Below, one piece after another: positions 7,280 through 50,024 of a stretch of 64,000 nucleotides of DNA (positions are counted from its first letter, which is position 1; each line of letters begins with the position of its first letter). Position numbers and translations under genes: made by a program. The notes beneath the pieces were generated by a model. It did not search any database. It was not told the origin of the DNA and worked only from the letters and a program-made list of their open reading frames with translations. The DNA lies in the NCBI GenBank assembly GCA_025201805.1, contig MU619332.1, positions 6,736-70,735 on the forward strand. The letters are read 5' to 3'. The DNA is from Parasitella parasitica NRRL 2501 (lineage: Eukaryota > Fungi > Mucoromycota).

Positions 7280-10488
<3,209 letters not shown>

Positions 10489-44856: not shown

Positions 44857-45950
44857 TTAACCCTTCTTCCGGTTCTGTACCTTTATATCGGACACATCTG
44901 CTAAACCATCGCCAGTTAATCTCAAGAATGTGATGCCCTCAGTATCACCTACTAGGGCCATGACAAAGGTAGGGCCATATACACCCGATTTGGTGTATCT
45001 GAGTTGAGGTTTGTAGTTGGCATTTGGTGTTCCAGTTAATTGGCCAAAGAACTGATTTAGCTCGTACAATGTTGGCATGCGGTCGTTTATATTTTTGACT
45101 ACAACTCGAAAATCTGGGTCTCCAGGGTCCCTTTTCCTCCAGCCAGGCCTTGGCTTATAGACATCCCAGTCAAAAGTAGAGCATAACGATGCATAAAAGG
45201 GCTTGTACCATGGCGAAGACGGAATAATCTGTAAGGTAGAATATATCTGAGAGTAACTAGTGCATCTATAATCCCAGACAAGAGGTCTGTGTTGCACAGG
45301 TTGGATCCAATGTGTGATGGCATTAAAGAGTAGCTTGAAAATAGAGGGAGCTGGTTGCTGCTTTGCTGGTATTTGATCTTTCGTGGAGGTAACGGCTGCT
45401 TTTTTGGATCTCATGACAATGTATCCCAGCCGTTTTAAATATGCATAAACTTGGTATTTATCAAATGTGATCCAGCCATCGCCACATTCGCACATAATCT
45501 CGCAATAGTCCTCGAAAGAAACTGGATCATCCGTTTGCCGTGTAACTATTAATGCGTTTCTAGCAACTAAAAACGCTGCTTCTTCAGGGAACAATGTAAT
45601 TGCGCCTTGATTAGAGAATCCCATTGAATGGAGATGAGTGCCTTTGTTCTTTTTGATGGCTGTATGATACGGGGATGATGGATTCAGTAGCCCTTCACTC
45701 ACATTTTTCGGTAACGCGACTGTGTCCGATATGCAATCAAATAGAGCTTGGCGAGATACTGCAAGCTGCTCTTGATTTGCTTGATTCGATGCATTTGCTT
45801 TCTCGCCTCGTTTCGGTGCTTGACTCTTTTTACTGCTGAGATGGTCAATAGGCGATGAATTCAAAGGCCATATTTTCATCTAATCTACCTCTTTTTCTTT
45901 ACCAATTGAGAATAGTCTACCAATAGTTCATCGGCTTCTGCATCGCTCAT
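44857..45950 (-). CDS. SEN54: tRNA-splicing endonuclease subunit Sen54, 2 exons
   Basis: PKRGEK, KGTHLHSMG..LFPEEAAFL, YQVYAYLKRLGYIV, FDWDVYKP..WRKRDPGDPDF, MALVGD..ITFL. Confidence 0.9.
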
Positions 45951-46116: not shown

Positions 46117-46969
46117 ATGGTATACGCGAGAAGGTCTTGTTACAAGTGCGGCAATGGTAAGGCTTATTTTTGCATCAGAACACCGGCAACTAACACAAAC
46201 ATCCAGCGGGCCACTTTGCTACTGCTTGTGCTGAAGCGGAAAGACTTTGTTACAACTGCAAGCAACCGGGCCATTTGAGCAATGAGTGCACTGAGCCCAA
46301 GTTCATTCAGCCCAAGACTTGTTACAACTGTGGAGAAGGTAATGGAAAATATGGCTGGGCTATTGCATTGCAACTCATTCTTGTTCAATAGTTGGTCATA
46401 TCATCGCTGATTGCCCCAATCCTGCGCTTGCCACTGCTCACGTCAAAAAGGAAAAGCAATGCTTTAATTGCCAGGATTATGTAAAATACGGTATATCCAC
46501 AGACAAGAATCTACCAGGCGATTGACATTGGTTGACATAGGGACATATTGCTAGAGATTGCACCAACGAAGCTCAACCTCGTCATTCGGCGGAACGCAAA
46601 CAACAGAGATTCAAGCAAGTCGTATGCGAAAATTGTGGGGGACTCAACCATTATGCAAAGGATTGTCAAGCAAGCGATATTGTCTGCTACAACTGCAAAA
46701 AGCACGGCCATATGGCTCGTGAATGCCCCCTCGCTATTTCCTCTGTTCAGCCTAGTGCTGCTGCTCATAGTGATAGACCTGTCAAAGCATGTTATAATTG
46801 CGGTAAGCCTGGCCACATTGCTCGCAAATGCTTCACTGCCAAAAGGGAGAGAGATGAAGATACCGATGGAACTGGTAATGAGAGCGATGACGATGGCGGG
46901 GAAGAAGATATCACAGATTCAGAGCTGTCTGCTACAGAGTCTGAATCTGACCAAGACCGTACAGCTTGA
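46117..46969 (+). CDS. GIS2: CNBP/Gis2/Byr3-type protein with seven CCHC zinc knuckles and acidic tail, multi-exon
   Basis: Seven CxxCxxxGHxxxxC-type knuckles after removing three short introns. Confidence 0.85.
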
Positions 46970-47018
46970 TTTGTGTGTTTTTTTTTTTGCAATAAAAAAA
47001 AAAAAAAAAAAAAGCCTC

Positions 47019-50000
47019 ATGATTATAAAGGATGTGGAATTACACCTCCTTATTCTGGTATTCTGCATTTGTCATACACGGGCTACAGGTCGTCTTCTTT
47101 CTTTCTCTTTCTTCCTTCATCCCTTTTTATTTCGTCCGAATATGAATTCGTCCATAACACCTGCTGGGCAAGAACTGAAAAGCACCAACAGGCCCATCTT
47201 TGGTGCGAATTCGATAGTAATCAATGATACCATTTACATACATGGTGGTTTTTATAATGTTGCTCCGTGGAACAAAGAGGCCCTGTGGGCATTGGACAGT
47301 TCACTCAGCAAATTTACTCAATTACAGACAGACCCATTTGCCTCACCAGCTGTGACGTACCATTCGCTACAGTCTCTCAATGCTTCAACGCTTTTAACCT
47401 TTGGCGGCCATCTGAACGAGCGAAATCTTACACCCCCCACTGAACCAGAGTATCTACGTTACTATCAGCTCAGTTTCGATTCAATGCAATGGACACCGCT
47501 GCAGAAAAAAAATGCCTCAATAGCGACGCCAAGAGAGAGATTTTGGCATACGACTAGTAAATCAAACAACATTATATACCTGTATGGGGGCATGAATATG
47601 ACTCATGGCATGTATGATTTTTGGAAATACGACGCACAGACAGATGGCTGGACCAGACTGTCGAATGTAGAAATGGCCAGATGTGGGCATACTTCAACCA
47701 TGACTGAGTAGGTACAACTGCCTGACCTTATGCCCATTATCTAACACACTCGATTTTGCTTTTAGTGATGGCAAAATGGTTGTTTTGGGTGGCTATGATT
47801 GCTCCAACTCGTCGCTGTTGACATCAGCGACAAAGAGTTTAATACCCTTAGATAAAGCCACTATTTATGACACCAACACGAATAAATGGTATGAGCAGAC
47901 CCTGAAAGGAGATATACCGCATGCGAGAACTTTTCATACGGCTGTCAAATGTAAGCATAATTAAGGCTCTTTAAAGTGTGTGTTTATTTAAATTCGGATA
48001 TTTGTGTGTTAGCAACACATAACCAAATCATCATTTGTGGAGGTAACGCAGGAACTTCTGGATGTGTTGTATGTACACTGACCTTATTTTAATAGGCCAA
48101 GATGGAAAAGTAGAACCGTTTCAATCGTATCTGTCGGGAGAACACGCTGTTGATATGACTGCAGTACTCAAACTAAACACATGGGAGTGGCGCATTCCAG
48201 ACGCCTCACCCTATCAACCCTTTCCAAGGTCGCATGCCATAGCCAGCATCGTTAACGACACAAAAATGGTTTATGGATTTGGTATTAAACGAAAAACAAG
48301 GGGCGACTGCGACAGAAACTGAATTATTCATGTAGGTATTAATTATCACACAGTCTATGATGGTTTGTATGTGTTTGACTCAGAAATCAATCAATGGCTT
48401 TCACCATATGATGCGTACCATGACACCATCCAACGCTACTCTGTCGGTTTAATTGTCGGATTATCAGTTTTGGGAGCCTTTCTCGGTTCAGCTTCGGTGG
48501 TCTTGCTGGGCTACTGGTTGATTAAACGGCATGGTGCAATTATTAACAATCTGTTCACAAACATAAGACAAAGTATATGGAACCCAAGGTAAAACATTAC
48601 TATATTGTATATATATATATATATATATTCATATAGGCTATCCTAATCTCTTACTTTTTGGCAGATCAGGAGAGCCATTGTGGGCCGAAATCAGTCGACT
48701 TCTGTTTCGTTTTTCATTTCTGGCCATCTTCATCACAATGACCACCGTGCTAGTTCTGCAGGTGCAAAATAGCCCAATCATAGATCAACAGTATTATGAT
48801 CATAATTCTGATTACACGGTTATAGCTCCAGGTATTTAAGCTCATACTGCAATGACAACAAACAGGTATTTATAGTAAATGGGCTGTATAGACATAAGGT
48901 TTTGTTTTGACGGCTGGGTCAACACTACAAGCCCTGTATTACAATGCGCCACTGATTTCGGAGAATCATGCGACACTTATCTGATCAACATCACGGATAA
49001 AGTCAAATCCAACTTGAATTATTACGGTACTAAGCTATCTTGTCAACTATTCAGAGCACCCAAAAAGTTATTCAAGCTGGGAAGAACAAATGATCGCATG
49101 GCTCATAGTGGCTCATTTCTCAAATTTTACTACTATGGTATACCCAGTACCAGTGACAGCATTTTACATGTCGAATTATACCACCCTGACCACGATCCTA
49201 ACCTTCCTGTGTACAACATCACTGGGGAATTTGAATGGTATAGCTCGGATGAAAATGCCAAGTTTCAGTCTTCAGAGCAAATGAACCTAAAGACAGAAAA
49301 TGTGTACGAAGTTCATCCCACTTTCGCTACACGTATTGGGTATGAATTATTCGAGCGACAAAAAATGGACGGTAGTGCGTGGAATTACATTGGTTTTGGA
49401 TCTGCTCGCATATCACAGTATTGGTTAAAGAGTAATCAAATGAGTGCAGATAGAGATACATCATACAGTACAAACCCACAACCTCTGGGCTCACTGCATA
49501 TATACCCTATGCGATACGACACAACAGTGATGCGAGAACAAAGAGCGTTTACATTAGTCAATGGTATGGGTATTGTTGGTGGTATATTTGGCCTCATTGT
49601 AGGGTTCCAAGCTAGTTTGTTTGGTTATCGGCCTAGATCGCCATGGGGTATAGTACACCGTTGGTCAGTAGGGCTGATGAGAAGGTCGTTGTTGCAAGGG
49701 CTACGAGCTAGATTTCCCACAACAGATGAAGTTCATATTCCAATTGTTCATCCTGTTCACAGACGATTTTCTGAGGCACTAGCAAAATCACCAATGACAC
49801 CAACTACTGCTAAAAAAGCTCAGTTTTTCCAAGCTACTATAGAGGAAGAAGAAGAGGATAGCTTGACAATTACATCACAGAAAAAATATCAGGAGGACGA
49901 AGAAGAAGACGAGGGGAAAAGAATGGCTCGTTTAGAAGAAAGATTGCATGTATTTGAGCTGCTATTTCAGGCTTACTATATAGACGATGAATTGTTTAGA

Positions 50001-50024
50001 TCATTGCAAAATGCCCAAAAATAA
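47019..50024 (+). CDS. Signal peptide + kelch beta-propeller + TM + DEG/ENaC-like two-TM channel module; multi-exon
   Basis: Spliced frame reconstructed (introns include 47089-47172, 48589-48664, 48832-48891). Kelch repeats IYIHGG, LLTFGG, PRERFWH..IYLYGG, ARCGH..VVLGG, ARTFH. TM0 GLIVGLSVLGAFLG; TM1 LLFRFSFLAIFITMTTVLVL then SP..APDIRFC; TM2 TLVNGMGIVGGIFGLIVG. Confidence 0.85.

Follow-up and report, generated by a model that had tools for sequence, protein, structure and literature searches.

A Fungal Gene Family Joining a Kelch Propeller to a Two-Transmembrane Module with a Predicted PAC/ASIC-Type Fold

Introduction

PAC is the proton-activated chloride channel of animals, a homotrimer that is opened by acid and has a basic residue at the inner end of TM2, its second transmembrane (TM) helix. 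DEG/ENaC channels are recognized by their trimeric assembly and by amiloride-sensitive conduction of cations. Both PAC and DEG/ENaC channels are treated as animal families with few protist exceptions. Attractin and other membrane proteins whose kelch propeller is extracellular are single-pass proteins and possess no channel-like module. Here we describe a locus on the forward strand of a 64,000-nucleotide stretch of AT-rich eukaryotic DNA from Parasitella parasitica (contig MU619332.1; hereafter the window), in which a kelch propeller, an extra membrane helix termed TM0 and a two-TM module are encoded by one gene. The product probably belongs to an undescribed family, expanded in Mucorales, in which a two-TM core with the fold of PAC and ASIC is fused to a kelch propeller through TM0, and our working model for this core is a trimeric pore.

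One Gene Encodes the Propeller and the Membrane Module

A mechanical list of open reading frames (ORFs) breaks the locus into the forward-strand pieces 46548-47711, 47776-47964, 47976-48092/48062-48322, 48365-48592, 48678-48839 and 48879-50024, which occur in changing frames, and GT..AG pairs at the piece boundaries restore the frame. The first piece extends upstream into the space of a neighbouring gene for a CCHC zinc-knuckle protein. The pieces from about 47142 to 50024 are exons of one gene, because a protein of 725 amino acids from Parasitella parasitica found in a search of representatives (KAI8639091.1, "hypothetical protein BD408DRAFT_421953"; hereafter P0051) maps onto the window with 100% identity over seven exons and six introns, with a summed length of 726 codons, and because relatives are colinear with the locus. 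All six mapped introns start with GT and end with AG, and all six donors begin with GTA. An earlier interpretation of the window made without database searches (hereafter the sequence-only reading) had held that the ORF track splits this gene and fuses its start to a neighbour, and that the pieces splice to one protein; the former is evident from the ORF list, and the latter from the P0051 mapping and the GT-AG introns. In the searches described below, exons were used singly, and P0051 was used wherever the complete product was required.

At the sequence level, the first part of the product is a six-bladed kelch propeller. Six units of strand plus Gly-Gly are readable across exons 1-4, and the Pfam search of the exons gave matches in exons 1, 2 and 4, with PF24981 (67.2 bits) and PF24681 (60.5 bits) both over the cutoff of 50 and Kelch_1 at 36.1 bits (cutoff 20.1). 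When profile A4 was compared with the PDB, KLHDC2, KLHDC3 and LZTR1 were matched at expectation values (E) of 1e-27 to 1e-29; the same search was of no use for the channel question, since kelch proteins swamp the list. Kelch-like tblastn matches were also found in the window at about 8.8-9.2 kilobases; these belong to a muskelin homolog and not to a second family member.

The propeller is followed by TM0, a positively charged linker of about 58 amino acids, TM1, a loop of about 245 amino acids, TM2 and a tail of about 130 amino acids or more that ends in a conserved helix. Conservation among relatives is concentrated in a few elements. The motif R-x-G-E-P-x-W-x-E before TM1 is kept with shares, among 59-68 relatives, of 1.00 (R), 0.97 (G), 0.98 (E), 0.92 (P), 0.93 (W) and 0.87 (E), and the ectodomain formed by the loop has four Cys residues conserved at 0.90 or more. 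TM2 is rich in Gly (shares of 0.87 for G575, 0.90 for G578 and 0.99 for G579). The motif F-G-x-R-P-x-S-P-W-G after TM2 is near-invariant, with shares of 0.94 (F), 1.00 (G), 0.93 (R), 0.94 (P), 0.91 (S), 1.00 (P), 0.84 (W) and 1.00 (G). Its Arg stands three residues after TM2, and this basic residue and the two acidic residues of the pre-TM1 motif are opposite pointers on ion selectivity. The terminal helix of the tail gives weak matches to GCN4 coiled coils (E of about 0.4-2). The kelch repeats, the three TM segments, the Cys-containing loop and the tail helix (49920-49958) had all been noticed in the sequence-only reading, and each of them is present.

Predicted Fold of the Two-Transmembrane Module

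Structures were predicted as monomers with AlphaFold2 without templates, from input alignments of 35 and 69 sequences, and were compared with the PDB by Foldseek. The two proteins modelled were P0003, an ortholog that runs from TM1 to the end and is 59% identical to the last exon of the window gene, and P0183, a stand-alone protein of Ambispora that is 17-22% identical to the Mucorales members. The P0003 model has a predicted local distance difference test score (pLDDT) of 78.3, with values mostly above 90 in the ectodomain, and the P0183 model has a pLDDT of 81.0 and a predicted template modelling score (pTM) of 0.71. A long helix is predicted in the tail of both.

The top Foldseek matches of P0003 are PAC/ASOR/TMEM206 structures (E of about 2e-8, TM-score (TMt) up to 0.60); ASIC1, ASIC2 and BRTNaC1 rank next, and 89 matches were obtained at E<=1e-3. 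P0183 gives the same ranking, with PAC at E 3.7e-13 and TMt 0.62, and human ASIC1a at E 4e-10. The top 11 and the top 19 rows of the two models are all PAC/ASOR/TMEM206, and the matches listed for both models are only PAC or ASIC/DEG-ENaC chains, with a Foldseek probability of 1.00; ASIC1a, ASIC2a and BRTNaC1 are among them at E 4e-10 to 3e-6 and TMt of 0.45 or less. Neither P2X nor Erv46, which had been named beforehand as comparators, is among the Foldseek matches listed. In these models, the module clearly adopts the protomer fold of PAC and ASIC, and its size and shape place it closer to PAC.

The sequence-only reading had proposed a DEG/ENaC(ASIC)-like channel, for which the absence of a palm-type fold in structure searches would have been the adverse outcome. 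AlphaFold2 and Foldseek instead return the PAC/ASIC fold. Thus, a palm-type beta-sheet fold is indeed predicted, but the nearest structure is PAC, and neither the Pfam cutoff nor the motifs of DEG/ENaC proteins are reached by the sequence, as detailed below.

A Sequence Echo of DEG/ENaC Channels

The last exon matches the Pfam ASC family (PF00858) at E 0.0016 and 18.0 bits (gathering cutoff 23.6), and PF00858 was matched at the same place, below threshold, in 14 of 35 relatives (best E 3.2e-4). HMMER aligned the segment 49494-49610 without gaps over 39 columns to residues ~381-419 of 2qts_A, which correspond to beta12-TM2 of ASIC1. About nine of the 39 columns are identities, and these include the pattern G-x-x-G-G-x-x-G-L highlighted in the sequence-only reading, whose gapless alignment of the same segment was based on an exact translation and has the same register as the HMMER alignment. 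The HMMER alignment ends at G586-F587 of P0051, and one column further would place Q588 at the Ser of the selectivity filter; in these implied filter columns, the share among 69 members is 0.23 for G586 and 0.59 for Gln at Q588. Comparison of the last exon with PDB sequences gave nothing at E<=10. Pfam includes a TMEM206 family, and no TMEM206 family was among the Pfam matches at E<=1.

Relatives and Distribution of the Family

A search with the last exon yielded 50 proteins, all from Mucorales where named, several of which have kelch domains upstream. A family profile built from 23 members was then scored against 1.84 billion representatives and gave 367 matches at E<=1e-3, of which 132 were at E<=1e-30; many are 750-1150 amino acids long, and their module begins near residue 400. 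For the 367 matches, taxonomy rests on the named members, and the 20 members looked up all come from Mucorales genera or Glomeromycotina. The genera are Parasitella, Chlamydoabsidia, Pilobolus, Radiomyces, Phascolomyces, Mucor, Fennellomyces, Dichotomocladium and Phycomyces, and, in Glomeromycotina, Ambispora and Funneliformis. Paralogs are found in Dichotomocladium (at least four), Phascolomyces (at least four) and Fennellomyces (at least three). At NCBI these proteins are called "hypothetical" or "uncharacterized" or bear only a locus label; in UniRef, some are entered as "Galactose oxidase" and one as "C2H2-type domain-containing protein". A scan of metagenomes returned a sole locus, L001 (CEQG01275811.1), a generic kelch gene that is 24% identical and unrelated, and it was not used.

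More than 40 full-length relatives from Mucorales have the order kelch, TM0, TM1, loop of about 245 amino acids, TM2 and tail, and the fusion of a kelch propeller to the two-TM module through TM0, as read from the window sequence at the outset, is thus common to dozens of Mucorales homologs. The Ambispora proteins P0183, P0199 and P0200 consist of the two-TM unit alone, without kelch or TM0, and one gene model of Funneliformis geosporum (P0177) holds two complete two-TM units in tandem. This arrangement may reflect a genuine duplication or the merging of two genes into one model. A word-based search with P0183 found only two more Ambispora proteins. By sequence comparison, the two-TM unit is a module in its own right, because Ambispora and Funneliformis hold it alone, and the kelch-TM0 fusion is its Mucorales form. 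No description of a fungal family with the kelch-TM0-two-TM architecture was found in open-access papers and bioRxiv, in keeping with the sequence-only reading, for which no description of it was known.

Membrane Topology

Topology statistics were taken from 41 full-length relatives with three clear TM segments. The mean net charge is -0.1 before TM0, +2.4 after TM0 and +1.5 after TM2. The ratio of observed to expected N-x-S/T sequons, with shuffled sequences giving the expectation, is 1.57 in the kelch part and 1.32 in the ectodomain, and 0.93 in the linker and 0.90 in the tail. A hydrophobic, signal-like N-terminus is present in 17 of 33 complete paralog models (P0053, P0054, P0058 and 14 others) and is lacking in 16 (P0052, P0055, P0060, P0064 and 12 others). 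The two groups are alike in their sequon excess (1.58 and 1.57, respectively) and in the charge bias around TM0. Because of this sequon excess, the charge bias and the signal-like N-termini, the data fit an arrangement in which the propeller and the loop are outer or lumenal, and the linker and the tail are cytosolic. Hydrophobicity, the AlphaFold2 models and charge also agree with the layout of a DEG/ENaC-type module, in which two TMs flank a large ectodomain and both module ends are cytosolic; on its N-terminal side, the module continues via the cytosolic linker into TM0. The placement of the propeller outside, as claimed in the sequence-only reading, therefore receives indirect support from sequons, charge and the N-termini of some paralogs, but the signal peptide that accompanied this claim is not found in the group of the window gene. 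The N-termini that lack a signal could reflect a missing short 5′ exon or an unusual export route.

A Working Model and Its Alternatives

Taking the gene structure, the order of the domains, the distribution of the family and the predicted fold as a basis, we propose a model for the topology, trimer formation, ion conduction and role of the propeller. The core would comprise the cytosolic pre-TM1 loop, TM1, the beta-rich ectodomain, the Gly-rich TM2 and the tail ending in a long helix, and the kelch propeller, attached by TM0 and the linker, would sit on the same side as the ectodomain, outside the cell or in a lumen. Three identical protomers would assemble around a pore whose lining is TM2; TM1 would lie outside it, the arrangement seen in PAC and ASIC, and movements of the ectodomain would gate this pore. 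The TM0-tethered propeller might be an integral domain for regulation or ligand binding, with glycan or cell-wall material as its probable target. The tail helix may aid trimer assembly and offer a docking surface in the cytosol.

Several observations weigh against this model. The Pfam ASC match spans only profile positions 384-444 of 455, corresponding to beta12-TM2; P0051 as a whole scores 17.2 bits, below the threshold; and equally weak matches to YqhR, an unrelated Gly-rich membrane family, occur in 9 of 35 members. Searches of the PDB with the family profiles A1 and A2 list ASIC1 and ASIC2 at E 0.27-0.6, which is not significant, and no PAC/TMEM206 chain was found in the PDB sequence searches at E<=10. 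The Gly-x-Ser selectivity filter of DEG/ENaC proteins is absent from TM2, and the conserved His-Gly is absent before TM1, where R-x-G-E-P-x-W-x-E is conserved instead; a His-Gly pair occurs just after TM0 in the window and is not common to the relatives inspected. Membership in DEG/ENaC is thus not demonstrable by sequence, the match being a sub-threshold echo, and membership in the PAC/TMEM206 sequence family is likewise not demonstrable by sequence. The TM-scores of 0.5-0.6 with a root-mean-square deviation of 6-7 Å indicate the same fold and not close similarity, and both structures are predicted monomers, from which the pore, the trimer and conduction are extrapolated. Finally, no signal peptide is seen in 16 of 16 N-termini of the window gene's own orthologous group, and the signal-less group, which includes the window gene, would on these models have to export a propeller of about 360 amino acids without one.

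The main competing explanation, which we regard as rather unlikely, is that the family has the PAC/ASIC-like fold without conduction and functions as a membrane receptor, an adhesin or a sensor of the cell wall or of glycans, in which the ectodomain and the propeller would bind outside while the cytosolic motifs and the tail helix signal inward. The most conserved parts of the protein are indeed cytosolic (the pre-TM1 motif, the post-TM2 motif and the tail helix), and their conservation fits partner binding as well as pore formation; moreover, kelch propellers are typically interaction domains, and the lack of the DEG/ENaC filter motif is in line with such a receptor. However, every solved protein found with the PAC/ASIC fold is an ion channel, the Gly pattern of TM2 is that expected for closely packed pore helices, and the two-TM unit also occurs without the propeller, all of which favor a channel.

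It is improbable that the likeness to PAC and ASIC is convergent or an artefact of modelling, in which case the product would be an unrelated three-TM kelch protein with a generic beta-sandwich loop. The sub-threshold sequence evidence, the moderate TM-scores and the small number of sequences behind the models would allow this explanation, but two template-free models of such divergent proteins give the same match lists with E values down to 3.7e-13, and the only sequence echo lies precisely where homology would place it, at beta12-TM2. Even less credible, to the point that we set it aside, is the notion that two adjacent genes, one for the kelch part and one for the two-TM part, have been wrongly merged: the stand-alone two-TM unit in Glomeromycotina and the reliance of the one-gene interpretation on genomic frames and gene models leave some room for it, but the frames join across short GT-AG introns without a stop, the stretch of TM0 and linker extends from exon 5 into exon 6, and the public model together with more than 40 models from more than 10 genera holds both parts in the same order.

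Coding Start and Feature Coordinates

The coding region most likely starts at 47142, giving 839 codons, because this is the ATG from which 15 ortholog exon-1 ORFs from other assemblies, 42-80% identical to exon 1 of the window, and P0052, a full-length protein of Chlamydoabsidia, can be aligned. In these 16 sequences, a Met stands 3-11 residues before a conserved A-G-Q, and the distance in the window is 8; the A, G and Q, encoded in the window at 47163-47171, are kept in 11, 14 and 15 of 15 relatives, respectively. The public model P0051 begins at an internal Met (47484), and the deposited protein appears from this alignment to be without 114 N-terminal codons (47142-47483), which correspond to about two kelch blades.

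An upstream ATG at 47019 is in frame and is followed by no stop, yet no relative has residues there; it immediately follows a run of 23 A, 50 nucleotides beyond the stop codon of the upstream CCHC gene. The sequence-only reading had used this extension and removed an in-frame intron at 47089-47172 to expose a signal peptide, which is contradicted by the relatives: the intron would delete the conserved A-G-Q, and its donor, GTCGTC, is unlike the six confirmed GTA donors. Because there is no AG between 47091 and 47170, no other intron can link the upstream ORF to the conserved N-terminus. To judge from the alignment of relatives, the region 47019-47141 is probably 5′ untranslated region or promoter. 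The sequence here is T-rich and gives hydrophobic peptides in every frame (e.g., the 47032 ORF), and the short intergenic space before the gene contains the A23 run at 46991-47013 and a CT-rich tract at 47089-47135.

For intron 4, a later acceptor at 48352-48353 was considered and rejected; the first AG is taken as the acceptor because relatives retain the residues encoded just downstream (48338-48352), and P0051 also maps to this site. A (TA)n microsatellite lies within intron 5, at about 48606-48628. The coordinates of all features are given in Table 1.

Table 1. Coordinates of the gene and of its predicted protein features in the window.
Feature	Position	Strand	Basis or remark
Whole coding region	47142..50024	+	7 exons, 839 codons and stop; 5′ end uncertain
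Upstream extension of the sequence-only reading (hydrophobic segment and CT-rich tract)	47019..47141	+	No relative has residues here
Exon 1, kelch blades 1-3	47142..47707	+	PF24981 1.9e-18, PF24681 1.9e-16; ortholog alignment
Exon 1, portion covered by P0051	47484-47707	+	Exact P0051 mapping
Intron 1	47708..47765	+	GT..AG, 58 nucleotides; exact P0051 mapping
Exon 2, kelch blade 4	47766..47950	+	Pfam and P0051 mapping
Intron 2	47951..48012	+	Sequence and P0051 mapping
Exon 3 (30 nucleotides), start of blade 5	48013..48042	+	P0051 mapping
Intron 3	48043..48095	+	Sequence and P0051 mapping
Exon 4, kelch blades 5-6	48096..48281	+	Pfam and P0051 mapping
Intron 4	48282..48335	+	Acceptor is first AG (48334-48335); relatives and P0051 mapping
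Exon 5, propeller end, TM0, beginning of cytosolic linker	48336..48588	+	P0051 mapping
TM0, extra helix tying propeller to two-TM module	48443..48523	+	Hydrophobicity in P0051 and 41 relatives; net charge
Pre-TM1 motif R-x-G-E-P-x-W-x-E, spanning intron 5	48587..48689	+	Conservation among relatives
Intron 5, containing (TA)n run	48589..48664	+	Sequence and P0051 mapping
Exon 6, pre-TM1 motif, TM1, first ectodomain residues	48665..48831	+	P0051 mapping
TM1	48699..48758	+	Hydrophobicity; helix 11-40 in the P0003 AlphaFold2 model
Beta-rich ectodomain, about 245 amino acids, interrupted by intron 6	48759..49556	+	AlphaFold2, Foldseek, Cys conservation
Intron 6	48832..48891	+	Sequence and P0051 mapping
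Exon 7, remaining ectodomain, TM2, cytosolic tail, stop (50022-50024)	48892..50024	+	P0051 mapping
Segment aligned to ASIC1 beta12-TM2	49494..49610	+	Translation confirmed; Pfam ASC, HMMER alignment
TM2, Gly-rich	49557..49622	+	Helix 280-302 in the P0003 AlphaFold2 model
Post-TM2 motif F-G-x-R-P-x-S-P-W-G, cytosolic side	49620..49649	+	Near-invariant among relatives
C-terminal helix, conserved, coiled-coil-like	49920..50006	+	AlphaFold2 models, GCN4 matches, conservation

Three further genes were noted in the window. The upstream neighbour at 46117-46969 (+) is the intron-containing CCHC zinc-knuckle gene (PF00098, 6.6e-09), and it is preceded at 44857-45879 (-) by a gene for a Sen54-like subunit of tRNA-splicing endonuclease (PF12928, 3e-08). 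The muskelin homolog is located at 7280-10322 (+) and has a Muskelin_N domain (1.2e-18) followed by kelch repeats.

Evolutionary Implications

A previous BLAST survey for Deg/ENaC proteins included Fungi among the taxa searched and reported none there; its candidates were restricted to holozoans plus a single alveolate and a single stramenopile (Elkhatib et al., 2023; PMC10507113). If the predicted structures are correct, the family described here would represent a channel type of the PAC/ASIC fold so far undescribed in fungi. A large fungal family with this protomer fold would shift the origin of the architecture to an earlier time, or would indicate an old transfer, and it would link PAC and ASIC by combining a PAC-like size and fold with an ASC-like echo in beta12-TM2.

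We put forward, as a possibility still short of probable, that trimeric channels of the PAC/ASIC type are not an invention of animals and a few protists, and that an ancient fungal branch exists in Mucoromycota, in which Glomeromycotina would have the bare unit and Mucorales the form fused to an outside-facing propeller, with several paralogs per genome and with gating or tuning by a built-in receptor for glycan or cell-wall material. Mucorales genera to which agents of mucormycosis belong (Apophysomyces, Lichtheimia and Mucor) are among those with multiple copies of the family, and, its annotation being uniformly hypothetical, it would constitute an unstudied class of surface or endomembrane proteins in Mucorales.

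Comparison with Known Systems

PAC (TMEM206, ASOR or PACC1) is the best structural match of the fungal module, and likewise has a two-TM protomer with a compact, beta-rich ectodomain; its resolved chains comprise 251-293 residues, and the fungal module has about 245 amino acids between its TM helices. No sequence similarity to PAC is detectable, the only Pfam match to a channel family being ASC, and the fungal proteins differ from PAC by the addition of TM0, the kelch propeller, the pre-TM1 motif and a conserved tail of at least 130 amino acids. The DEG/ENaC/ASIC proteins are the second-best structural match and the sole family with a sequence echo, at beta12-TM2, whereas the fungal ectodomain is about two thirds the size of theirs and has four conserved Cys. 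No channel of the PAC/ASIC class is known to combine an extra TM helix such as TM0 with a kelch propeller.

Attractin-type membrane proteins share with the fungal proteins a propeller (Beta-prop_ATRN-LZTR1, PF24981) that is followed by a membrane helix, and the resemblance is confined to the propeller; these proteins cross the membrane with that single helix and are without a channel-like module. The stand-alone homologs of Glomeromycotina belong to the same family according to HMMER (E 9.8e-19 and 1.8e-23 against profile A2) and share the predicted fold and the motifs after TM2 and in the tail. They differ from the Mucorales proteins in having neither kelch nor TM0, and their short N-terminus would be cytosolic, as in the classical two-TM topology.

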